From contig CAJFCJ010000014.1 of NCBI GenBank assembly GCA_904063045.1, positions 1,981,643 to 2,045,642 on the forward strand: a DNA stretch of 64,000 nt, given 5' to 3'. The first letter of the stretch is position 1; every line of letters begins with the position of its first letter. The notes under the pieces were generated by a model that did not search any database, was not told the origin of the DNA, and saw nothing but the letters and a program-made list of their open reading frames with translations. The stretch comes from Dimorphilus gyrociliatus. Taxonomy: Eukaryota; Animalia; Annelida. Shown piece after piece: positions 5,516-26,171 of the stretch. The position numbers and the translations under genes were made by a program.

Positions 5516-6649
5516 ATGGGAAAGCTTATTAATAACTGGTTTTCGGCAATTGGTATCTTTATCATTGTATTTATCGTTTTCCCGTCAGTCTATATACTGA
5601 TGTTGAAAGATAATATTTACAAAGCCTACGAAATTATGCCAAAGGAAAGTCGAACGGCCGCTGAGGATGTTATCAAGGCCAATGTTGATTCGAATATGGA
5701 AATTTCAACAAATAATTTTTCATTGCTGAAAAATTATCTAAGTTCTCATAAAAGACATGAAAATGTAAAAATTGAACAATCTAACGTTTCAACTGTTAAA
5801 CAAAAGATTCAAGCAGATGTAAAGTGGTTTATTGCTGGGTAATTGTAATTTTGAATTTGATATAGTTTCATTTAGAATTTAGTATAGTACTTATACTCCA
5901 TTATTTTTCAGTGAATACGGACCTTTTGTTCTATTTTTAACTTTATTTGGCTTTTCTGCATTCTTTTGTCTACCGACAAGTTTCTTCTATATTTACAAAA
6001 GATGCTCAATAGATAATCCTCAGGACATGCATTATAAGACGAGAAAACAATTGTACTGCCTACTAATTTTGCTTATTGTTTGCTTACCAATGGCAACAAT
6101 TTCAATGTATACATTTTTCTTTAAAGCTCTAAGGAGTAGAGAAGATATACAATCAAAAGTTATTATTGAATCTTTTCGTCATCAGATTGGGTAAATGACC
6201 ATTTAATTATAATATCTTATGATTTTGTATTTCAAACAACATTTTACAAATAATTCAGATATTACGAAATTGCCTTATATGCACTATTTATGATGGGAGC
6301 TGGGTTTTCTTTAATGATTCCTTGCGCTTCTATTTATCTTTTACGCCAATTAAATCAAGAACAATACTCATTCGATGATTATTTCGGTGATGATGACGTA
6401 TTTAACACTACTGTTGTGGTACCAGCTTCATCTCCTGATCCTGAATCTCCAAAAGTTACAAGTCCCAAATTTCTAATTTCGGTAAAGATATGAAAGCTAA
6501 AACATTTATCACACTTTTCATTATATTTGCAGTTTCCAGGTTTAAATATTAATAAGAAAAAAATAATAGCTCCTCCAAGCTACAAGCTAAGGCCTCCAAA
6601 CTATGAAGAAGCTGTACTTACTCATTATACCTTTGAGCAAATAGATTGA
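5516..6649 (+). CDS. Orphan 4TM protein with tandem PY motifs (PPSY, PPNY), member 2
   Basis: Four exons starting 5516, about 5912, about 6260 and about 6532 (intron phases 2,2,0). Four TM segments; the tail reads APPSYKLRPPNYEEAV. Confidence 0.8.
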
Positions 6650-7806
6650 AAACAAAAAGTATTTCCGCTTATCTTTCACCCGGTTGTCCATCATCACAGA
6701 AGCTTTTATCTCCTTTTAAGCCTATTTTATCCAAGAAACAAAGACTTTTTTCAATTAAAGATAAATGTTAATTTGATTTATCAGCTTCTTAATGTATAAA
6801 TTGTATTGAATGAATGTTTCTCCTTTTAAATAACTTCACGAGATTGACAAAAAGGTTAATGACCGTTCATTAAATATTCGTTTATTATAGTAACGAATTA
6901 TATCTCTTCATGTTTGATATATAAATACTTTTCAGTAATAAAATACATATATAAAGATAGAAAGTAAAGTAAAACGCAATTAATAACACAATTAATAGAA
7001 TATCTCATTAATTTAAAAAAAAAATTGCTTAATTATGATTATAGATGAGTATTATGAAGATTGAAGAAAGGACTTAAAACAGATATGAATATAAAAATTT
7101 TTAGACAATTAGAATATGGTTAAAAGTGAAAATACACATCAGTTAAATTATCCGGAAAGTGTCATCTTGCAGAGAATAATTACTTATTGGTTCTATTTAT
7201 ATTAACGAAAACTTACTTGTCAACTATACAGTATTACTGTATAAACTAAAGATATAAAATATACTCTGTAACACATTATTCTCATTTTCCAGTATTTTCT
7301 AATTATATTTAAATGTATATCTACAATATTCTTTTGCTATATATAATAATGATATAATTAAGTGATGATATTTCTCTTCCTTTCATGCGTTCTTCCCTCT
7401 TAAACGCCTACACAATATCCACTAATATAGAGATTGTTATCATTGCTTTTATTCTCAATTAAACAGACATTTTACTTTTTAATTATTCAAATGATTTATC
7501 TTCTTTTAGAGGATATTGTCTATCATGGACTAAACTGGAAATAATATTTTTGTTTCTATGTGTGTTTCACAAATGCTTATTATGCTAAATATGAAAAGAG
7601 AGAAGAAAAGAAATAAATTAATCTTATAATATCAACATTCTTCCCGAATCGTCCAACATCAAACAGATTTTGAAAATCTTTTGTGTCTTTAATCTATGTG
7701 AAACTAAATTTAGATATATCTGTATTAGTAAAACAGGAACACAAAAATATTCTTTGTTTCTGGTAAAAGAATGGAAACAGTGTTAAAAACGTAATAGAAT
7801 GACATG

Positions 7807-8800
7807 TTAAGGTTTTACACTAAATAGTGTTTCCATTGCGTTTTTCTCCATCTCTGATAGTGTTATCAGAATTTTTGATGCATCATCAATATATTTAACA
7901 TCTTCAGTTTCAGCAACTTCCTCGAAAAGTTGGGCAACTTGTGTCCAAAGTTTACTGATTTCTTTAAAATCAATGTAGGCATCATGATATTCCTCTGTAC
8001 CAAGCAATTCGTAAGACTCGAGTAAGAAATCGCGATACATATTGCGGAATACAGCACCACCCGTTCCAGCTCTCTCCATAAGCATTGCTAAAGTTCCAAA
8101 ATCCTTTTTGACATCTTTGCTTTCTTTAAACCACTTTTTAATTTCTGTGCTACTCTTAAGAATTCCTTTGTAGCCCATGTTCGATATTGGAGGGTTTAAA
8201 TAGCTTTTTGCATTATTATAAATGGCATTTTTAATAACAGCCTTTAAATCATAGGGTTCTGATCCTTTCTCTATAATAAAACTCTTATTTTTAGATGACA
8301 TTGGAGCTTTTTCACTTCTTGCTAGTTCTAAATTCTTTAATTTGGTTTTTAATTCCTTTTGTTCCGCTGTATCAATCATATATGCGTCCGTTTCGTCATA
8401 TCCAAATATTGTTGCATAATGGGCTCCAAAGTGAATCTTTTCAGGCATATAATCCATATAATCCAAATGGTAACAATCTAATTTTAGACCAACTGGAATG
8501 TCTTGATTCTTTAACATTTGTCCAAGCCTTTTTAATTGAAGCAGTTTCTTTTAATTCAACCTTTAGGTTTAAATTTTCGCAAATTTTTTGTAATAATCCA
8601 TCCGGTTTAGGCCGTCCACCAAAAAATGGTGTATCCATAGATTTCATTCTCCAACCCATATAATTTAGCCCTTCACCAATACCGAACAACATCGGTTCGG
8701 AGAGATCAATACCTAGATGTTTCAGCAAACATCCAACAGCTGTTGTCTCGCAATGTTGACCAAAAAAAGGTTTAAAGTTGTGTACTTTTTTCAAACTCAT
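7807..8800 (-). pseudogene. Bacterial-type BtrH N-terminal / DUF4872 protein (papain-like NlpC/P60 fold), intronless, one frameshift
   Basis: ORF 8441-8875 (ATG 8800: GQHCETTA, LSEPMLFGIGEGL, PFFGGR) overlaps ORF 7807-8517 (IPVGLKLDCYHLDY, HFGAHY, MERAGTGGAVFRNMYRDFL). These match my recollection of bacterial BtrH_N/DUF4872 proteins. The frames switch at about 8502-8517. This may be an assembly error rather than true pseudogenisation. Confidence 0.85.
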
Positions 8801-9671
8801 GCTGTTAACTGTAATTGTTGATTCCAAACGCAATTTACCTGCTAAATGGAGATTAAAAGAAGTGCACTCAAACAAGCAGACTACAAATTTTGATAATTCA
8901 AGTTTATTTTTAGAATATTATTGCTATTACTCTCTCAGGTAAATTTTATCTTATTAATCGGCAAGAGATACGGAAGAGGATAATCAACTTTAGAAATTAA
9001 GCAATTATAACACATAAATAAGAAAAATATCGAAACCGGAAAGGGAAATAGTTTTCAATTCGTTACGTTTTTAAATTTCGTTTAAAACTATTCTTCTGTT
9101 CTGTTGAAATCAACTAATAATATTACCGAATTTATTGAAAAATTAATACTTCAAAAATCGTGTCAGTAGAGTAGAGTAGTTTGGTTAATCTCTGACTGTA
9201 AAACGCAAATGATTCTCTATAGCTATATCTTACAAAACAAGTAGAAAGTAAATTTAGATTGTATTGAAGGAAAGTATATATATATATGTTGGATCGACAA
9301 ACTACAAACGTCGATAATGGACTTTACATAGGGGAAGATTAGTCATGTTCTTAATGAATTGAATTTGAAGATAACATAGTTCAAATAATAGTCAAGATTC
9401 AAGGACGATTTTAAATGTTTCAGGTCTTCTTAAACATTTATGGAAGAGTTAAATATAAGAAAAAAAGATATAATATATACGTAAATAACATTGTATATAA
9501 CGATCTATGTTGATATACAGCAAATATTTATGAAGCTTTTGTTTTTCTTAATTGCCATATAGTCTTTCCTTTTAGACTCTGTAAATACGAAAGAAGATAA
9601 GATTGAACAGGTAATCCGTATTTTCTGATATTTTGTCTAATGATAAAGTTACTTTAAATGGCTAATAATGT

Positions 9672-10782
9672 TTATTTCTTATGTACAATTGAACTATAGG
9701 AAGGAGGAGGAGTCATATCATTATCCTTGTTTATGTTTCTTCAAGTACAAAAACAAAAAATTGAAGAATATTAATTAGAAATTGAATATTTGAACAATAA
9801 ATTGTTTACCTTGTTGGGTTAACGTTGGTAGTCCTATATAAATAAGTAGCAGTATCCCTTTTTCTTGATATGTTGTTTATTTCTGAAGGATCTCTTTCCT
9901 GGTAAAAATATAGATATGTTATTTAGATATACTATAGATACTCTATTAGATATAGCATATAGTTTACGAAAGTTTGCTTGAAATAGATTGATTTGAAATA
10001 TTTAATATAAATTGACTTACAATCTCTTCTTCGTTTCGGATATCACTTGAAATTTTTGCTGCTGCTTCTGCAATAATATATTTACAGTATATTATAATCA
10101 AATTTACTTATATTAATTAAAATAAAGCTTTACTCTTTTTTTCCATAAAGTATATCAATATTAATGCTGAACGCCAAACAAAAAGTGGGACTGCTACTAC
10201 TAATCCATAGATCATTCGTATTCCATATTTATAATATTTACTATTATGTGGATTATTGTAGTCTCCGCATACTTTCAAGCTATTAACTGATGGATCATAT
10301 ATGACTAAGTAAAACATGTTCAAGCATATTATATACGCATAGTTAATATTCATTAAACCAGCAATTCCAATTTTAAAATTTAAACTTCCATAATCTAAAT
10401 ACTTTAGACCAAATGGTAATCCAAAACCCCCAAGTAAGACAGCAACGACCGTCGTAGCTATCATATAGCATTGATATTTTCTAAAAGTGATCATATTTTC
10501 CATTTATTTAAATAATGTATAAATAATAATAAAGTTTAACACTTACGGTACTATGAATGATGTTACAATACAAACTTTCGTATTTATAGTTGGGACCTCA
10601 GTTTTATTGATTTCGTAGGGTTTTAGTGATACATCTTCAGGTATGGCTTTATATGAAATTATCTCACCAAAATTTTCCCTCCAAATGATAATGTGGTAAA
10701 TAGGGCCAATAGTAACGCTTGCCAATATGCCTAAGAATGTGATATTCGCACACAACAGCAAAATTCCTTCTTTAGCAACCAT
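9672..10782 (-). CDS. Orphan 4TM protein with PPPSY tail, member 3 (subfamily B)
   Basis: Five exons, intron phases 2,1,0,2. Motifs GPIYHIIIWRENF, KVCIVTSF, NYAY and KVCG; the last exon encodes MTPPPSYSSIVHKK. Confidence 0.85.
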
Positions 10783-11387
10783 ATTTCTTAGTAATGTTTA
10801 TCACAAATTTACTGGTATAACCAAATAAATTTCTTGATCAACACATTCGCGTCTACAAGTTTTTCTGTTAAATATACTTCAACGAAGACTTGTTGACGAA
10901 CGAATGTATCTTTTATTAATTATTTTCACTATTTATACCATTTTCTTCAGTTAGCACTACTCAATCATAAGCAAAAACTGATAATTAGGCCTGAGTGAAT
11001 AAATGTTTTCAATATGACATTTTTTTTAGTCTCAGTCTAAATTAGGTTGGAAAGGTTGTGTTATATATATACAGTATATATGTTTTACAATGCTATATAT
11101 ATATATAAAAGATCATCTATAACAATATTAAAGCTACATGGTGTTTTTCAACTTTCTCTAAAGCGTTACAATTTCAAATGTAATTAATTAATCTTTTTGC
11201 CTCTTTGATATTTTAATTAAAACAACTTAAAATACTAGTTAAACATTACAAACAATTATTTTTATTGATTATTTATAGAAGTTTTTATTTGAAAAAATAT
11301 TAATTTGCTAAAATAGAAAAAAAGGAACAATTAAAATGTTTTTTGTTGAAAAACGTTGAAAATGATAAAAAGTCCCCTAATCGGTAA

Positions 11388-11424
11388 ATATATATCTATA
11401 TATCTATATATATATCTATATATC

Positions 11425-11459
<35 letters not shown>

Positions 11460-11460
11460 C
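11388..11460. repeat. (TATATC)n/(TA)n microsatellite
   Basis: Read directly from the sequence. Confidence 0.9.
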
Positions 11461-11613
11461 GTATAAAAGATAAAAATAGGTTACAAGCTTTTTAAATATC
11501 AATGACAATTAATAAAAGAAAAAAATATTTATAATATAAAAATGGTACTTTTGTTCAATTCTTTAAATTTTCTCTATCTTTACTTAGCCAATTAAAGATT
11601 GTTACTTACTGAT

Positions 11614-12462
11614 TTATTTCTTTGAAATAAAATCCATTTCTGTAAATTCCTTGTTATAAAGGAAAAAGAATAATACGGTTATGTAAAATAAGGAAAATGA
11701 TATCATTCAACTTACTAAATTGGAGTGATTTTGAATATCATTTGAGATTTCGTCAATATTTTCTAAATTTAAAAAAACAAATGGAAAATATTTTATAAGA
11801 AACAAGCAAGGAAATAAATTTTTACCAGCGCATTCTTTACTATACATCCATAAAAGTATTGACCTCCAAATGAGTAGTGGTATAGCAACGACTGACCCAT
11901 AAATTATTCTTATTCCATATTGGTAGTATTTATAATGATGATAATAACCGTGTTCTCCGCATATTTTAAAATTATCAACAGTTGGATTAAATATAAAGAG
12001 ATAGTAGATATTTAAACATATCACATAGACATAGTTAACTATCATTAAACCAGTTACTACAATTCTCAACTTTGAACTTTGAATTTCTATATAATTAATT
12101 CCAAAAGGAAGTGCTAGGGTACCAAATAACACCATGATTGCAGTGTAAGATATCATTAGTTCTTGATAGTGCCTAGAATTCACAAATATTTTGAATAAAC
12201 TGTTCAATAGTAACAATATATCTTACGGTTTTATAAAAGAAGTCACTATGCATATTTTCATATTTGAATTCATAGCCTGAGTTTTATTAATGCTGATAGA
12301 TATTAATGATCTATTTTCTATGATAGCCTTGTATTCGAGCACATCCGTAAAATTCTCTCTCCACGAAAGAAGATGATAAAATGGACCAATAGTTACGCTA
12401 GTTACTATTCCTAAAATTATTCCACAGGAACACATAATCAATAATCTTGTTTTAACAATCAT
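11614..12462 (-). CDS. Orphan 4TM protein, member 4 (closest paralog of member 3, short tail without PY)
   Basis: GPFYHLLSWRENF, KICIVTSF, NYVY, KICG and IPLLIWRS align with member 3. Same first three intron phases (2,1,0); the fourth exon stops after EFTEMDFISKK. Confidence 0.85.
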
Positions 12463-12912
12463 TCTATCAATCTATCTATTTCCTTTATTTTATCCCGTTA
12501 AACATGAAAGAGTCTTTTATTTGTTAATTTTTTATTAATTCAATCAATTCTCTTTTAAGGAAATAACTTGTCAGCTTCAAATATTTAGCTTACTTCATAG
12601 ATATTCTATTAAAGATAGTTTACATATTAAAAACAACCTTCAAAGTAATTTCTTATAATGTACAGTGTCCGTAAATACTTTCCCATATTTGTTTTTTTTT
12701 TGTCTAATTTTGAATACAACTCTTTAGCTTTGCTATATTGAACTTTCTGTAATATAATTGATATATATTAGTATATATATACATATAAATTTATATATAA
12801 AAGGAATAAAAAGTGGCATTTTATCAAAATTCTACAATTAAAATAGGATGTATATATAGAAATAAACTATTTCTTTTTCCTCTTTAAAATATTCTTTAAA
12901 AGTTATATATTT

Positions 12913-14006
12913 TTAAAATTCGCTTCTGTTTGAAGAATTTTCATCTTTATTTACTTCCGGTTGCGATAGCCAGTAGGAAAGTGAAAATACACTTGAAAAC
13001 ATAGTATGAAAACTATTTAAAAACGTCTCATTTGAGGTTGGATTATCGATGTTGGCATGAGATGACGGTGATGAGTTTAAATTTGATTTTGATATATTCG
13101 GTGATTGATGCATAGTATTAAATTGTTCAGGAGATGACGTCTCATTAAAAAGATATCTAAAAAAATTAAGAGAATAATATGGAAACTTGATAAATTAAAA
13201 ATAATCTTACCCTTTATTTATAGAGCCGGATGGCAAATTTTCAGTAGCTAATGTTTGAAACGCTATTGCTTCTGTAATACGAGGCTGAGTAAGTGATTAA
13301 TCATTAAGTTTAAATAGACAATTACACTTGATGTATACTTACTGAATTATTTTGTTTAGGCGTAGTCACAAAATCTTTATTAACTTGATCAGGGATACTC
13401 CTATCGCCAATTAAATTTAAGCAGATAACTAAATAAGATTGAAATGAGATAATTTTAAAGGAATACGAAAGAAAACTTACAAAGCATAGCCAAGTAAATA
13501 AATTCGGGCAGTGAAGCAATTGATAGTAAAACGTATGAGACTAGAAATTTTGGCGCTTCGACACTTTCATCACAGTTTAGAGAATGATCAAAAGAAGCTC
13601 TCTTTTCGTAAAGGATACTTATACATATCACATAAAAGTTGTTGAGTATTACCAATACAATAAAGAATATATTAAAATTTGAACAACAGCTGTACAAGAT
13701 ACAAGGCAAAAGGACGAAGGAAGTAAACACTGATATAAAAATTGGATAGCCCTCGATTACTGAAGCAAATCGTCTGTAAATAACTACTAATTATGAATTA
13801 TATAAGAGATATAATAAATTAACAAACAGGTTCTTATATTGTATATTCGTACAATTTCTATATTCTTCTTGAACTATTTCAGAGGTTCTTTCAAAATTTT
13901 CCTGAGAGTATAAAACATGGCAAACGGGTCCCAAAGTTAAATTTGGAAGGGTAAAGATTGTTACAAGCAGAATCGGTAAAAATAATTGTTTAGAGTTTTC
14001 ATTCAT
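12913..14006 (-). CDS. Orphan 4TM protein, member 5 (subfamily B, Ser/Asn-rich tail)
   Basis: GPVCHVLYSQENF in exon 1. Five exons with phases 2,1,0,2, joining the ORF-track pieces at 13791, 13455, 13322 and 12913. Confidence 0.7.
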
Positions 14007-14431
14007 TGTAAAACTGGTTTATTATATAATTTAAAATAGTTTATAGACTAGAAATATACCGAAATGAAAGGAAAATAAAATTAAGAGTATTGAAATAAAT
14101 AAAATAGACATATAAAAGTATCGCAAATTATTCCAATCCGTTAAGGTGTCCACATTTAAAAATATCTATTATTTTGAATGAGCAGTTAAGCTATCTATAA
14201 CTGTAATTATACATGTAAAAGTTGATATTTTTAAAAAGAAAATGAGTAAAATTTCAATCAAAGTGTCCGATACAAACGATTACGTGATTATATAGTAATA
14301 ATATTTTGATTTTATTAATATACTATTTATTGTACAATTTAGACAATTGAAAAGATTTATTTGCTGATAACTCTTATCAGGCTACTTCTTAATTATAATA
14401 ACCTTACTATCTAATTTACGTGAAATACACA

Positions 14432-15469
14432 TTATAATTTTGTTTTTATAGACTTATCTTCACTTTCCTCTGAAATATTTAAAGTTGTGACTGAACTTGA
14501 TAATTCTTGAGAGCTATCTCCTTCTCCAAGAGATTCAGTGTGATCTTTATTGAATGATGATTCAGTTGTTGAACAACTTGAACAATTTGTTAAAGTAACT
14601 GTTGAAGGTTCACTTTGGTCAGAAGGTTGCAGCCTTTCGTTAATTTCTAATGCTCTGAAAGTTCTAATGGATTAGTATTTAACAGAAATATTCTATTACT
14701 CATTATAACTTGCCTGTTATCATAGGAAGCGGTTGCAACATTACTTTCTGTACTATTTCGCACATACATTTCATTATTATGCAGTTTACATCGATTAGCG
14801 TTATTGGTAGAATCGTAAGTAAAGTGCTCTTTTAGTTTCAGAACTATAAATGGGACAAAAGTATTAAAAAAAAGACTAATCTGTTGTTTAAAGTTTATTT
14901 GAAAAATCTAACTTAAGATTAGAAAGGCAACATGACCTAGTATTCCAATTGCCAAGAGTGTATAATCAGTTGTAAAAGATGTCGCTTCAAAGTCATGTTG
15001 TTGACACATTGAATATTTTTTCAAGGTAGTTCTCATCGTTCTCTCACATAGAGAAATTATGCAAAAAGCGTAAACGATACTATAAATAATTAACAGTTCA
15101 ATTACTATGAGTGCTCCAAAAATGCCTTTACTCAATTTCGAACCGTTGCAAAAATATAAACAAGTAATAAAAGATAATCCATTAAAAATAACAAGTAAAA
15201 AGTCATAGGATTTCACTATCTCAATATGTTGTCTATGGAACAAAGATGACTGCATGATACTATTCCAGTATCTCAACTACTGAAAAATATTTTACTTACA
15301 TTTCAAACTTGTGCACTGTACAGTTTTTTGTTAAGTTACCAGTATATCTTATAGAGCGATAGAAATCAGTTTCATAATAGAAAATATTCCAAGAAGCTCC
15401 CACAAATAAACAAGAGAAGGTAAATAAGATAAAGATGATAGAAGTAAAAATTCGCCATATTTTCTTCAT
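14432..15469 (-). CDS. Orphan 4TM protein, member 6 (Ser/Glu-rich tail)
   Basis: ATG 15469 (MKKIWRIFTSIIF...KNCTVHKFE), phase-2 intron, then a TM2-TM4 exon within ORF 14908-15276, a phase-1 intron and an acidic Ser-rich terminal exon. Tail splicing is partly uncertain. Confidence 0.7.
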
Positions 15470-16138
15470 ATTAAACGTAATATCCTGTTCAACAAATCTT
15501 AGGGACAATGTCAAAAAAAAACGTTAAATTCATAATAAAATATTAATATATTTAGAATAATATTACCTTAAAAAAATATATCTATAAAAAAGAAAATGAT
15601 GATAATGAAAACTTGAAAAGTTCTACTATTTTTAAAGAAAATTTACATCTCTGTTCCATTTGAGAGAAAGTACTGGTTTAAAAGTTCTAATGTAACAATT
15701 TTCCTACAGGATTACTAGGAAAAAATATTGATTTTGTTTGTGTAACATATTGGAATTATTTGAAAATAATCAGAGTTTTAGTTGTTGTAACTATTGTATA
15801 AAAAAAATGGAACATTGTTTTTAAAAACTAGGTGTTTTTGTTAAGTTTTCAATAACAATTAATCGATATTTAAATATATAGAAAAAGTATTAGTATATTA
15901 TTTTATTTAATTAATTATTATATTAATTAAGACTTTGGTTCAAGTAATACATTGATTTAAATCTTTTATTTCAATAAATAGTTGAAATTGTAAAATAAAG
16001 TAGTAAATCCTCTTGAAACTGGACTTCTAAAGCTATATTGAAATATTATACTTAACTATAGAGCAGAAGAAAATTTCGCTCTGATTTTATTGACGATAGA
16101 AAGTATTCTTTTGAATAGATATTCGTATCTTTTGAAAT

Positions 16139-16802
16139 TCATTTCTGAATTCTTTTCGTAGACTAGCTAAGGTTTGCTCTCCCTTCTTCGCTACAATAGT
16201 TTTTACATACAGAGAAACTACTGAACAAGGTCATTCAATGAGATTTACAGGAATTTGGTATAATCTTCATAATATATCAATTGTAATGAAAATATTAAAA
16301 TGAGATTACTGTATTCACCTAATAAAATATGAAATGCCATTTGTTAAATTCATTATAATTGAAAAATCTGAGTTAGGACATTGAGTATATTGAGAATATG
16401 TTAAATTATTGAAGTATTTATGCATTACTATCATAGAATAAAGAAAACTTATAATTTCTGTGCTTATAACAAAAACGTTAGGGGTCATAGATGCCAATAA
16501 GCAAATTTGTACAAGAACAGACCCAAATACTACAGTTGCCGGATAGTATTTAACAAATGAAAGATAATTTCTAAAAGAAAAGGATTTCATTATACAACTA
16601 TTTCATTCGCAATAAAGGTTACTTACAAACTATTTTCGTAAACCATTATACAGCGTTTTCCTTGATATTCAGTTAGTTTAACTGCACCTTCGAAATTTTC
16701 TAGATAATATATAAAGTGGCAAAGTGGCCCTAGGAGAACACTAACAAAAATCGTTGTTTTGTAAATTGCATTTTTAGCTAGATAACATTTATCCTGCGTC
16801 AT
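16139..16802 (-). pseudogene. 4TM member 7 with a probable nonsense codon in TM4
   Basis: Exon 1 has GPLCHFIYYLENF...KRCIMVYENS and a phase-2 intron. Exon 2 lies in ORF 16315-16590. Exon 3 reads RLYQIPVNLIE*PCSVVSLY with TGA at 16231-16233, close to the Trp in TM4 of members 3 and 4. Confidence 0.6.
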
Positions 16803-17569
16803 TCCTAAACACCTGAAAATTTCAAAATTAGAATAGATACACCATCTTAATATAAAATATTATGATACTTTAAAATAAGAGCAACGGCAAAATGAGGATT
16901 GAACAGAATAATCCGCAATAATTGGTTCCAGAAACGCAGTAACTTCTCACAAAAAATTATATCATATTGAGTCTATAAGTATTCTAGTATGAATCGTTGT
17001 TCACCCGTTAAAAGGAATTTATATAGGCCTTTTTCATACGTTTCTATTGTGGAATTTCGACATTGTCTACTCGACAAATGGTCATAGGTATTGAAAAATC
17101 AAGTGATGTGATTCCAATAAACAACCTGTTCTTTAAATATTCTAAAGCAATGGCAGTTTAAGATATTATTTGGCTATTAGAATTGGATTAGTTAATTATT
17201 CTAATTAACAATTAAAGCTAAATAATTATTATATTATCCTCCTATTTTTTCCTTTTGCAGTATTTTCACTTAAAGTTATTTGAATGTTTTTAAATTTGAT
17301 GAAGACTTGTAGCAATTAATTTACTATTATTTCATCAACCTTAAGTCCATAAATTAAGGATAGTATGCCATATTTTGCATAATTTTGAACAATGTTTATG
17401 CCAATCACTTCTTTGTTAGGATAAGGGATTTAGTATATATTGTATATTGAAAGGTTATTATTAATGTCCTAGAAAACTATTGATCAGTCACTTTAAAGAA
17501 GTCACATGCAATCTAATATTGTTTAAAGCATCAAATTAGTGTTTTTTTTAAATTTCTCTTAATGTGAAT

Positions 17570-21071: not shown

Positions 21072-21656
21072 ATGACTTTTGGCATAATTGAAACTTCTAC
21101 TTTTGTCACCTGCTTACTATTTTCAAGTGTTCTTTGTGCTCCTTTATGGAAAGACGCTTGCCTTCAACTGGATCCTCCTAATTTACAAGACACTTTGGCC
21201 GAATATCGAGCTCAATATGACGTTCAACCAACATCAATGAATTCCTACTTTAGTAAGTCGTTCGGTGATTATTTAGTAAGTGAAAACGAGAATGTTACGT
21301 GCCCTAAATCCCTAACTGATCTTCAAATTGAACTCAATAAGAAGAAGATTACAACTAAACCATCCACTTGTCCAACATATTCAGTTATCAGCTATAATGA
21401 AGACCGCTATCCAAGATCTATTAAGGAAAGTCTATGTAGGTGTACACAAACTGAAAATAATGGGTGTTTAACACGAACAAGTCAAACTGACCGTAGATAC
21501 GAATGTGAAGCAGTATACGCAGAAATAGTTGTTTTATACAAAGAGAGAGGCACTTGCGAAGGAGAATTTTCAAAATACGTTCCCTCCTTGTATAGGCAGT
21601 CAATGGGGTGTACATGTTCCTATAAAATGTATTTGAGAGCAAACATAAGCTTTTAA
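21072..21656 (+). CDS. IL17: Interleukin-17 family cytokine, copy 1 (single exon)
   Basis: Signal peptide followed by the IL-17 cystine-knot pattern STCP-YSVISYNEDRYPRSIKESLCRC...C...CEAVYAEIVVL...C...GCTC. Confidence 0.92.
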   Translation: MTFGIIETSTFVTCLLFSSVLCAPLWKDACLQLDPPNLQDTLAEYRAQYDVQPTSMNSYFSKSFGDYLVSENENVTCPKSLTDLQIELNKKKITTKPSTCPTYSVISYNEDRYPRSIKESLCRCTQTENNGCLTRTSQTDRRYECEAVYAEIVVLYKERGTCEGEFSKYVPSLYRQSMGCTCSYKMYLRANISF

Positions 21657-24031: not shown

Positions 24032-25601
24032 TCAATCTTACATTGACTATTAGATTGGACTATTTGGCTTCTTGGTCTTTTCTTTATTTTTTTTTAATAT
24101 ACTATGTTTTGATATAAAACGTTTCTCTTCAGCACAAGCTGTTCTTCTTAAGTATACAGAAATTTATGTTACGTAATCATATTATTAAATAAATAAATTT
24201 AAATTGAAAAATGAAGAAAGTATCAATTTGAAAAATTTAAGCGACTAAAATATGATAAAACTATAAAAAAGTAGCTTGATGAATAACTGGTATTCAAAGA
24301 TCAATAATAGACATCTAAAGTGTAGGATATGCGGAGATATTTTTAGGAATCGTCAATCATATATAACCAATCATAAACTGATTCACTGTAGAAAAGGTAG
24401 TGGAAATTTTTCAATAACTATTACTAATAGATAGAATAATTATTCTCTTCTTCTTCCTGCTTTTCAAATTATAATTAAGCAAATATAAATGAATGTTTAA
24501 TTAGCAAAGTTGAAAGTTCTAGTCATTTTGAAGATGATCGATCCATTTCACCAATGGATATAAGTACTGAAGTTGATGTAGAACATATGGAACTTTAGAT
24601 ATACAGTATACAGTGTGTATATATATATATATTAGAATGTCATTTAGTAATTAACGGTTTCACTCACAAAGTTCAACTACATAATTTAATTTTAATATTT
24701 CTGGCTAAATATCAAACAATATCTTTTCTATTTAATAACCGTTTTCAATATTTATTTTAATATCTAGAATGATCTATTGGTGGAATAGATATTCTTTTAT
24801 CTTAAAAAAAATTAAAGCACTTGAGAAAATATTTACACTTGAAAACTTAGTAGCCAATGAAACTTAAAAATCTTCTCTTCCTTCTTGATGCTTGTTATTT
24901 TCTTTTCCAAATTAAATTTTACAATAATTACTGCTATTATGTAATTGGTATTGATTGACTTTTGCATAAAGTAAATGCTGTACACGTGTAAGAATATATA
25001 TAATACACGGGCAGCGGTTGCAGTCATTTTAGTAAATAGATAGAGCACTACATGATAATTAATTTCGCCTTATATTATTAGTACTATCAATATATGAGAA
25101 AGAGCTAAATTGAATATCCTATTGGATATCAGAGTTAAAAAATAGCAGTAGCAATTTTATGAAATAGAACAAATGTTTTGAATTATTTGAACGGAAAGCA
25201 CCAATATTTACGAGATAGTTAAATATATAGGTAAGTCGAATTAAAAATTCATGTCAATTATATACTTTACAAAATATTAAAGACACTGTTATCTATCGCT
25301 TTATCTTATCTTTCAAATTTCTGAGGGAACTTTGTATAAAACATATTATATCCTAAGCACTTCTTAGAGTTTACGCAGTTATTCAGTACTTAGTCATTTG
25401 GTATTACAATGGAATTTTTCGCGTTCTGATATGTAAGTTTCCAAGACATATTCGAAGACCTTATGGTTAAATTAGACATAATTTAGAATATTTAAGGATT
25501 GACTTTGCGTCTTCAACATCAGTCGCAGCAAATTAATTAACAAAGAATACTAAACAATCTTTGAAAATTATTTGAAAGATATCCTATTGAATATTACGAA
25601 A

Positions 25602-26171
25602 ATGATTTTTAGCATAATTGAAACTTCTACTTTTGTCACCTGCGTACTATTTTCAAGTGTTCTTTGTGCTCCTTTATGGAAAGACGCTTGCCTTCAACTG
25701 GATCCTCCTAATTTACAAGACACTTTGGCCGAATATCGAGTTCAATATGACGTTCAACCAACATCAATGAATTCCTACTTTAGTAAGTCGTTCGGTGATT
25801 ATTTAGTAAATGAAAACGAGAATGTTACGTGCCCTAAATCCCTAACTGATCTTCAAATTGAACTCGATAAGAAGAAGATTACAACTAAACCATCCACTTG
25901 TCCAACATATTCAGTTATCAGCTATAATGAAGACCGCTATCCAAGATCTATTAAGGAAAGTCTATGTAGGTGTACACAAACTGAAAATAATGGGTGTTTA
26001 ACACGAACGAGTCAAACTGACCTTGAATTCGAATGTGAAGCAATATACGCAGAAATAGTTGTTTTATACAAAGAGAGAGGCACTTGCGAAGGAGAATTTT
26101 CAAAATACGTTCCTGCCTTATACAAACAACAAGTTGGCTGCGGTTGTGTTCATAAGACTATCTATGCATGA
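25602..26171 (+). CDS. IL17: Interleukin-17 family cytokine, copy 2 (single exon)
   Basis: Near-identical to copy 1 over about 510 nt; the C-terminus diverges to QQVGCGCVHKTIYA. Confidence 0.92.
   Translation: MIFSIIETSTFVTCVLFSSVLCAPLWKDACLQLDPPNLQDTLAEYRVQYDVQPTSMNSYFSKSFGDYLVNENENVTCPKSLTDLQIELDKKKITTKPSTCPTYSVISYNEDRYPRSIKESLCRCTQTENNGCLTRTSQTDLEFECEAIYAEIVVLYKERGTCEGEFSKYVPALYKQQVGCGCVHKTIYA

Follow-up and report, generated by a model that had tools for sequence, protein, structure and literature searches.

A transcribed bacterial BtrH_N/DUF4872 gene in the chromosome of the annelid Dimorphilus gyrociliatus, probably a young pseudogene

A gene of bacterial origin encoding a BtrH_N/DUF4872 protein lies in the chromosome of the annelid Dimorphilus gyrociliatus, where it is transcribed and carries a genuine break in its reading frame. 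It occupies positions 7807..8800, on the minus strand, of the window (the whole stretch of 64,000 nucleotides analysed, from contig CAJFCJ010000014.1 of assembly GCA_904063045.1), with its ATG at 8800-8798 and its stop codon at 7809-7807, and its coding region is distributed over two frames. Taken as a whole, an explanation by transfer, transcription and subsequent decay into a young pseudogene is probable. On this explanation a bacterial gene of about 1 kb entered the chromosome of this small, AT-rich annelid at the downstream end of an array of four-transmembrane (4TM) genes. The encoded protein, predicted to have the CtaG/CcbD/AziU3/U2/BtrH fold, would have received an acyl group from a carrier-protein thioester on its active-site cysteine and passed it to an amine or hydroxyl acceptor. 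In the animal the gene is transcribed, a spliceosomal intron of 49 nt linking its exon to host sequence farther upstream, and a net deletion of 8 nt now shifts the frame between the cysteine and the His/Asp pair.

The coding region is formed by two overlapping open reading frames (ORFs) in different frames of the minus strand, 8875..8441 (ORF A, first ATG at 8800) and 8517..7807 (ORF B), which can be joined only near 8500-8512. Frame A includes an N-terminal piece of 98 homologous codons (8507..8800, minus strand) that is 58-63% identical to bacterial proteins and carries Cys17 (codon 8752-8750) in the motif HCETT. It continues as an out-of-frame tail of 22 unrelated codons (8441..8506, minus strand), ending with the stop at 8443-8441. 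Frame B, open from the ATG at 8517, provides the C-terminal piece (7810..8505, minus strand), which comprises helical DUF4872 and what remains of the papain-like domain. The putative catalytic residues of this piece are a histidine, the second of HFGAHY (codon 8421-8419), and an aspartate (codon 8373-8371). An earlier note on this DNA had given the same coordinates and family and had pointed to the cysteine of HCETT and the histidine of HFGAHY, all of which hold; the single coding sequence of about 330 codons that it described exists only after frame correction.

The family assignment is supported by Pfam scores far above the curated cut-offs. BtrH_N (PF14399, gathering cut-off 29.7) matches the N-terminal piece with 74.3 bits over profile positions 1-84 and the C-terminal piece with 35.3 bits over positions 88-133, and DUF4872 (PF16169, cut-off 28) reaches 156.1 bits over positions 2-173 of 173. 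The annelid coding region is about 60% identical to prokaryotic proteins of 328 residues, and Cys17 of ORF A, together with H29, H33, D41 and D49 of ORF B, sits in invariant columns. Among NCBIfam models the sole match is DarH_acyl (NF053550), with 103 and 49 bits for the two annelid pieces and 177 bits for the bacterial homologue P0001, all below the cut-off of 300. A search of the PDB at the sequence level, run from one sequence as well as from a profile, gave no true match, and none was obtained with the PADLOC defence models.

P0001 is 61-63% identical to the annelid pieces, and its AlphaFold2 model (pLDDT 90) has a two-part fold, with a papain-like N-domain and a helical C-domain. The best PDB match found by Foldseek, over the full length, is CtaG (9qvj; E 6e-12, TM 0.69-0.72), with AziU3/U2 and CcbD next in rank; for C39 peptidases and phytochelatin synthase the match is limited to the N-domain of the model. 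The spacing between histidine and aspartate in the annelid copy is 16, equal to that between His128 and Asp144 of CtaG, and the triad is assigned from this spacing, by analogy with CtaG and not from measured geometry. Pfam BtrH_N has been placed beside C39 and C70 among papain-like enzymes (PMC10318531). CtaG, BtrH and AsbE have recently been grouped in a class of papain-like transacylases that depend on a carrier protein and combine a Cys-His-Asp triad with a helical C-domain (PMC12865890), and in the chemistry predicted for BtrH the acyl group passes via the active-site cysteine (PMC10318531, PMC12865890). By analogy, the intact protein would be expected to form an acyl-cysteine intermediate, followed by transfer or hydrolysis. 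The papain-like Cys-His chemistry and the family suggested by the earlier note agree with the Pfam matches and with the CtaG-like fold of the bacterial homologue.

A word-indexed search of 5.8 billion proteins returned 3545 matches, the best 120 of which show 56-63% identity and are mostly 326-329 residues long. All named entries among these best 120 of 3545 are prokaryotic, and no match exceeded 63% identity in this collection, Logan assemblies included. A scan in which each prokaryotic species was represented by a single genome found at least 584 loci, spanning Bacillota, Bacteroidota, Planctomycetota, Chloroflexota, Atribacterota, Pseudomonadota, CPR phyla and DPANN archaea. In the ESM Atlas, the nearest clusters are 75-100% bacterial (6 of the 10 listed are 100%). 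In a plasmid collection only distant relatives were present (25-41% identity), mostly on large actinomycete replicons.

In a maximum-likelihood tree of 92 rows, the annelid sequence falls inside a bacterial clade with an SH-aLRT support of 99, which the tree program places in its starred class; the 30 rows of this clade are mostly marine and belong to Bacteroidota, Planctomycetota and Chloroflexota. A sister link to Planctomycetota is weak (84) and may be a long-branch effect. The annelid terminal branch is the longest of the tree (0.69, against a median of 0.12); it could belong to an unsampled donor lineage. Since all named relatives are prokaryotic and the annelid sequence is nested within a prokaryotic tree, the direction of transfer, from prokaryote to animal, is secure. 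Horizontal transfer from a prokaryote, the origin proposed in the earlier note, which had looked to a protein search and a phylogeny for confirmation, is thus very strongly supported. The matches listed from the protein collection also support, short of proving, the view that orthologues are lacking in other animals. No paper on DUF4872 was found in the literature searched and, judged by titles, no report of a transfer of BtrH_N/DUF4872 to an animal; the transacylase class likewise was not found reported from animals. The D. gyrociliatus genome paper does not include an analysis of gene transfer (PMC7854359).

Across bacterial phyla, CPR bacteria and DPANN archaea, members of the prokaryotic family share 60-80% identity, and they are often AT-richer than their flanks. 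No neighbouring gene family occurs in more than 5 of 71 bacterial loci, so that a conserved operon partner was not found, and a carrier protein adjoins the gene in none of the five bacterial contexts inspected, nor is one located nearby in the annelid window. A minority of loci adjoin AraC/MerR-GyrI-like or HTH-WYL regulators or a protein of the beta-lactamase family. On a bold and at present doubtful reading, the identity across phyla, the AT-richness and the occasional drug-sensing GyrI-like neighbours could mean that the family represents an unrecognised and highly mobile gene for the modification of xenobiotics.

The gene is part of the animal chromosome. The window is located about 2 Mb into its contig (C14) of the 77.9-Mb assembly, where the gene is single-copy, and no intact second copy was found elsewhere in the genome assembly. 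Contigs assembled separately by Logan from short reads of public runs were placed on positions 6300-10800, namely a DNA contig (X1) and two contig sets whose splicing marks them as RNA-derived (X2, from 2020, and X3, from 2017). The two RNA sets come from different studies, and X1 may share its sample with the genome assembly. X1, which is 21 kb long, covers 6300-10800 including both junctions, with 0 differences. In X3, the exon 9100..7760 is joined by a GT-AG intron of 49 nt (9149..9101) to 9150-9738 and continues into the 4TM exons. An intronless gene whose named relatives are all prokaryotic is what would be expected from contamination, or from a chimeric assembly joining bacterial to animal DNA. 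The odds of this are negligible here: the short-read contig spanning both junctions is independent, the flanks are AT-rich and non-bacterial, similarity ends at the edges of the coding region, the position is far inside a contig, and the splicing of the gene's exon into host sequence could not arise from a bacterial contaminant or an assembly chimera. True integration, as the earlier note had supposed, is therefore virtually certain.

Similarity at the DNA level to the bacterial homologues is confined to 7822-8811 (64-66% nucleotide identity). Flanking repeats, target-site duplications and relics of bacterial neighbour genes were looked for around the gene and none was found.

The gene is located at the downstream end of an array of 4TM genes on the same strand. 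Its immediate upstream neighbour, outside the transferred region, is a host 4TM gene of about 260 residues and five exons (9672..10782, minus strand), delimited by RNA contigs and ORF inspection, with its ATG at 10782, its stop at 9674-9672 and GT-AG introns of 66, 66, 122 and 71 nt. On the other side lies a convergent gene on the plus strand, which has a 51-nt GT-AG intron at 6481-6531 and ends near 6865. Both neighbours are spliced in RNA contigs, in line with the two intron-containing animal genes recognised by the earlier note, and the intron sizes of the flanks fit the median of 66 bp reported for D. gyrociliatus (PMC7854359). The same note had placed the gene in an immune-looking locus. 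The sole basis for this tie is the presence of IL-17 genes 13 kb away, including an ORF with an IL17-domain match at 21072-21656, and it is not retained.

It had also described the coding region as GC-richer than its flanks. This is numerically true (0.34 against 0.24-0.26), but it reflects the difference between coding and non-coding DNA: the coding sequences of the host within the window span GC values of 0.27-0.37 and their GC3, about 0.27, equals that of the BtrH-like gene. GC and GC3 were also discarded as signs of foreignness or amelioration, since host coding sequences and bacterial homologues share GC3 (0.27 against a median of 0.295).

Transcription of the gene in its host is documented by the RNA contigs of both studies. 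X2 and X3 are spliced contigs that cover the gene from 7735 and 7760, respectively, to 9054 and 9100, with 0 differences and 0 gaps, and their ends define a short 3' untranslated end (7735..7806, minus strand). The intergenic region 6866-7734 is covered by neither RNA run. Upstream of the coding region, the 49-nt GT-AG intron (9101..9149, minus strand; GTATTAAT...CAACAG) has been removed in X3 and is retained in X2, which is unspliced over 9071-9611. Between this intron and the 4TM stop lies a stretch represented in both RNA contigs (9150..9671, minus strand), which is non-coding and without a long ORF. X3, with a length of 6172 nt, reaches 3.5 kb farther upstream across other genes of the array; it is evidence of continuous transcription, not of a single mRNA, and does not prove that the gene has a promoter or mRNA of its own. 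The 4TM stop codon is overlapped by an AATAAA (9676-9671), so that the 4TM mRNA can probably end there. The segment from 9150 to about 9650/9671 is probably the first, 5'UTR exon of the BtrH-like transcript, a product of 4TM read-through, or both. The possibility that the ORF is fused to the protein of the 4TM gene upstream was considered and rejected: the 4TM frame stops at 9674-9672, and there are stops in frame A upstream of the ATG at 8800.

The break of the frame, located at 8500..8512 (minus strand) by alignment to bacterial proteins, is a property of the gene. Between the motifs WxN and PVG the annelid sequence has a loop of 6 residues and one extra base, compared with 9 residues in every one of the 41 bacterial sequences where both motifs were recognised. 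The resulting net deficit of 8 nt shifts the frame between the catalytic cysteine and the His/Asp pair. The sequence of the break is identical, without gaps, in the genome assembly, in the DNA contig and in both RNA contigs, and is thus neither an assembly error nor an intron. That the shift stems from a misassembly or a homopolymer miscall can be dismissed, as the same sequence is present in one DNA and two RNA contigs and 8 nt are missing, not 1. A short intron between the two frames was equally discarded, given that RNA contigs and genomic sequence are colinear from 7760 to 9100.

A second small lesion is found 40 nt downstream of the frame break. It is a perfect tandem duplication of 9 bp (8446..8463, minus strand; GATTATATG twice), which adds the residues MDY just before the segment with the histidine. 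The segment has 10 residues in the annelid copy, compared with 7 in 62 of 64 sequences.

The consequence of the frameshift is that, in DNA and RNA contigs alike, the catalytic Cys, His and Asp are not encoded on one translatable polypeptide. The product of ORF A would have 120 residues, 98 native and 22 unrelated, and would be devoid of the histidine and the aspartate. ORF B is without the cysteine and has no obvious route of translation: its ATG precedes the stop of ORF A and stands behind many earlier ATGs, so that normal scanning would miss it. The working enzyme gene envisaged in the earlier note is therefore at odds with a break that is real in DNA and RNA contigs and that parts the cysteine from its partners. 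In the sequenced strain the gene is, with fair confidence, a young transcribed pseudogene.

It is conceivable that the gene still works, by a rare +1 slip of the ribosome at AAA-G, by reassembly of the two fragments, through the DUF4872 part alone made from an internal start, or from a hidden intact allele. The two pieces are equally preserved (58-63% identity), the gene is transcribed in two studies, the ATG at 8517 opens frame B just before the junction, and the Lys-tRNA that reads AAA could shift to pair with AAG at 8512-8509; moreover, assembled contigs drop rare variants, such that an allele of this kind could escape notice. Equal preservation, however, is also expected if the lesion is young. 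The site has neither a stop nor a rare codon that could promote a +1 slip, and the position of the frame B start, upstream of the frame A stop and behind many ATGs, makes reinitiation or leaky scanning unlikely. A papain-like fold severed between the cysteine helix and the histidine strand is not known to be active as two fragments. Persisting activity thus seems quite improbable, and the copy is better regarded as a pseudogene that would now be inactive.

The history of the gene before the break can be approached through the pattern of its substitutions. The annelid copy retains the consensus residue in 92% of the columns with a conservation of 98% or more, in 82% of those in the 90-98% class and in only 21% of the variable columns. 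At highly conserved columns it shows 16 departures, compared with a bacterial median of 3, a ratio close to that of the branch lengths, which implies that the pattern of constraint among sites has been kept. Apart from the frameshift, its 330 codons include no stop, whereas a random sequence of the same composition would have 0.082 stops per codon. As many as 171 possible single-base changes would create a stop, and the chance of remaining stop-free falls below 5% beyond about 0.05 neutral changes per site. The avoidance of conserved columns and the absence of in-frame stops together point to selection on the protein that lasted until recently. The ORFs being still free of stops, the break is young relative to the 35-40% divergence that separates the gene from any known relative. 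The gene would thus have encoded a functional protein in the past, more likely in the worm than in the donor.

As the main alternative to the preferred explanation, the gene could be a recent arrival from a divergent, unsampled bacterium that was broken at or soon after insertion, never functioned in the animal and is transcribed only by read-through from the 4TM gene. No orthologue with more than 63% identity was found anywhere, the Logan assemblies of public runs included. That none was seen in other animals is also easier to reconcile with a young transfer than with a long period of use by the worm. The RNA contig X3 runs without interruption from the upstream gene, the stop-free ORFs point to a young break, and the gene has the composition of its low-GC homologues in bacteria (GC3 0.27, the median of the homologues being 0.295), donors being as AT-rich as the host and composition therefore uninformative. 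Against this, in a family that has been sampled thousands of times, the annelid sequence is the most isolated row, with 63% identity to its nearest neighbour, while the median for bacterial rows is 82.5%. Any flanking bacterial DNA has left no trace, a spliced intron is present upstream of the ORF, and the AATAAA over the 4TM stop suggests that the 4TM mRNA can end before reaching the gene. The likelihood ratio of codon usage also leans towards the host, albeit weakly and with overlapping host and donor ranges. On balance a recent, never functional arrival appears unlikely, and divergence within the worm, followed by a late loss of the frame, appears somewhat more likely.

A bolder extension of the same history would see in the gene a long-domesticated transacylase of the carrier-protein type, the frameshift being a recent lesion of an inbred strain and the gene being intact in wild dinophilids; in a rarer variant, the enzyme would be active in two pieces or through decoding of the frameshift, and the donor family might be a mobile, xenobiotic-modifying one. 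This extension is doubtful at present.

Transfers of bacterial genes into animals are known, but outside rotifers, nematodes and arthropods the examples are still few. The annelid record grows with each one that physical linkage and splicing confirm. The BtrH-like gene also offers a snapshot of the turnover of acquired genes, in which a protein that would have been under selection, transcription and an upstream intron are followed by a probable knockout through one small deletion. It carries a caution as well, namely that transfer candidates described from "frame-corrected" sequences should not be counted as functional. The DUF4872 donor family, for which no literature was found and which is unusually mobile among prokaryotes, may deserve biochemical study.

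Among characterised enzymes, the ligase of closthioamide biosynthesis CtaG (PDB 9qvj; PMC12865890) has the solved fold closest to that of P0001 and the same two-part build, and its Cys-His-Asp triad shows the 16-residue His-to-Asp spacing of the annelid and bacterial family. The two share a mere 13-15% sequence identity, with no match at the HMM level. Moreover, CtaG belongs to a biosynthetic cluster with two carrier proteins, whereas the 328-residue family has no conserved neighbour and the annelid copy is broken in its frame. BtrH, the ACP:aminoglycoside acyltransferase of butirosin and namesake of PF14399, is a member of the same N-terminal Pfam family, a likeness that is conveyed by the Pfam family and not by the BtrH sequence. 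It is encoded in an antibiotic gene cluster together with the carrier protein BtrI, a context that the 328-residue DUF4872 family does not have. The DarH-type acyltransferase model (NF053550) aligns along the full length of P0001 and with both annelid pieces, although with scores below the cut-off, which makes the BtrH-like gene a relative and not a member. At the level of the genome, the closest parallels are other transfers from bacteria to animals, which likewise consist of an intronless coding region of bacterial type, embedded in animal DNA and transcribed, with eukaryotic splicing around it; the BtrH-like copy differs from them in having a genuine frameshift.

In the same-strand array that holds the bacterial-type BtrH-like gene (7807-8800, minus strand), one RNA-derived contig of the 2017 set X3 (record 14, 6172 nt) runs unbroken from the bacterial-type gene (7760) across the adjacent spliced four-TM gene (to 10800) and for 3.5 kb beyond it in the upstream direction, and thus crosses several genes of the array. 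This continuity is read-through or overlapping UTRs; the species has been reported to have neither operons nor trans-splicing (PMC7854359). The spacer between the two genes may also be crossed by a plus-strand transcript, since a joint at 9608-9698 in the 2020 RNA-derived set X2, in which 89 nt are skipped, shows GT..AG on the plus strand and is therefore oriented antisense to the four-TM and BtrH-like transcripts. This joint is weak, its shorter side being 27 letters.

At the 3' end of the bacterial-type gene, the stop codon lies between the two arms of a 15-nt inverted repeat (7770-7784 and 7823-7837, 87% complementary and 38 nt apart), and a T-rich run comes after the repeat, directly ahead of the RNA contig ends. 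The repeat could be the relic of a donor terminator or a chance match.

The four-TM genes form a tandem array of diverged members on the minus strand (10117-17000), each with a first exon of approximately 79 residues and a second of approximately 120-170 residues separated by an intron of approximately 66 nt; their proteins have no Pfam match. Farther along, on the plus strand, lie an ORF of 194 residues with an Interleukin-17 domain (21072-21656, Pfam E 3.5e-11) and another of 199 residues (25572-26171). Spliced fragments of the four-TM gene, at 10037-10352 and 10653-10800, are also present in a 2024 coral metatranscriptome run (X6), with an identity of at least 99%. The sampled coral seems to be home to the worm or to a very close relative. 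The bacterial-type gene is not covered in this run, whose depth is only 2-3.

Sequences of the 328-residue BtrH_N+DUF4872 family differ unusually little among very distant prokaryotes (loci L008-L087, proteins P0001-P0120): Clostridium shares 73-79% identity with DPANN archaea and CPR bacteria. The GC content of the family gene is at least 5 points below that of the flanking DNA in 13 of 65 prokaryotic loci (largest gap, 0.316 vs 0.473), and no conserved neighbour was found among the loci compared. The family seems to be a highly mobile accessory gene in prokaryotes. A literature search found no paper on DUF4872. A minority of the bacterial loci have the gene beside regulators with small-molecule-sensing domains of the AraC-GyrI-like/Cass2, MerR-GyrI-like and HTH-WYL types (for example, L003:9013-10518, L033:3596-4537, L018:2234-3049 and L020:3379-4320), and one such locus additionally has an MFS transporter and an Eis-like acetyltransferase close by. 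These neighbours hint at a part for the family in xenobiotic or antibiotic response.
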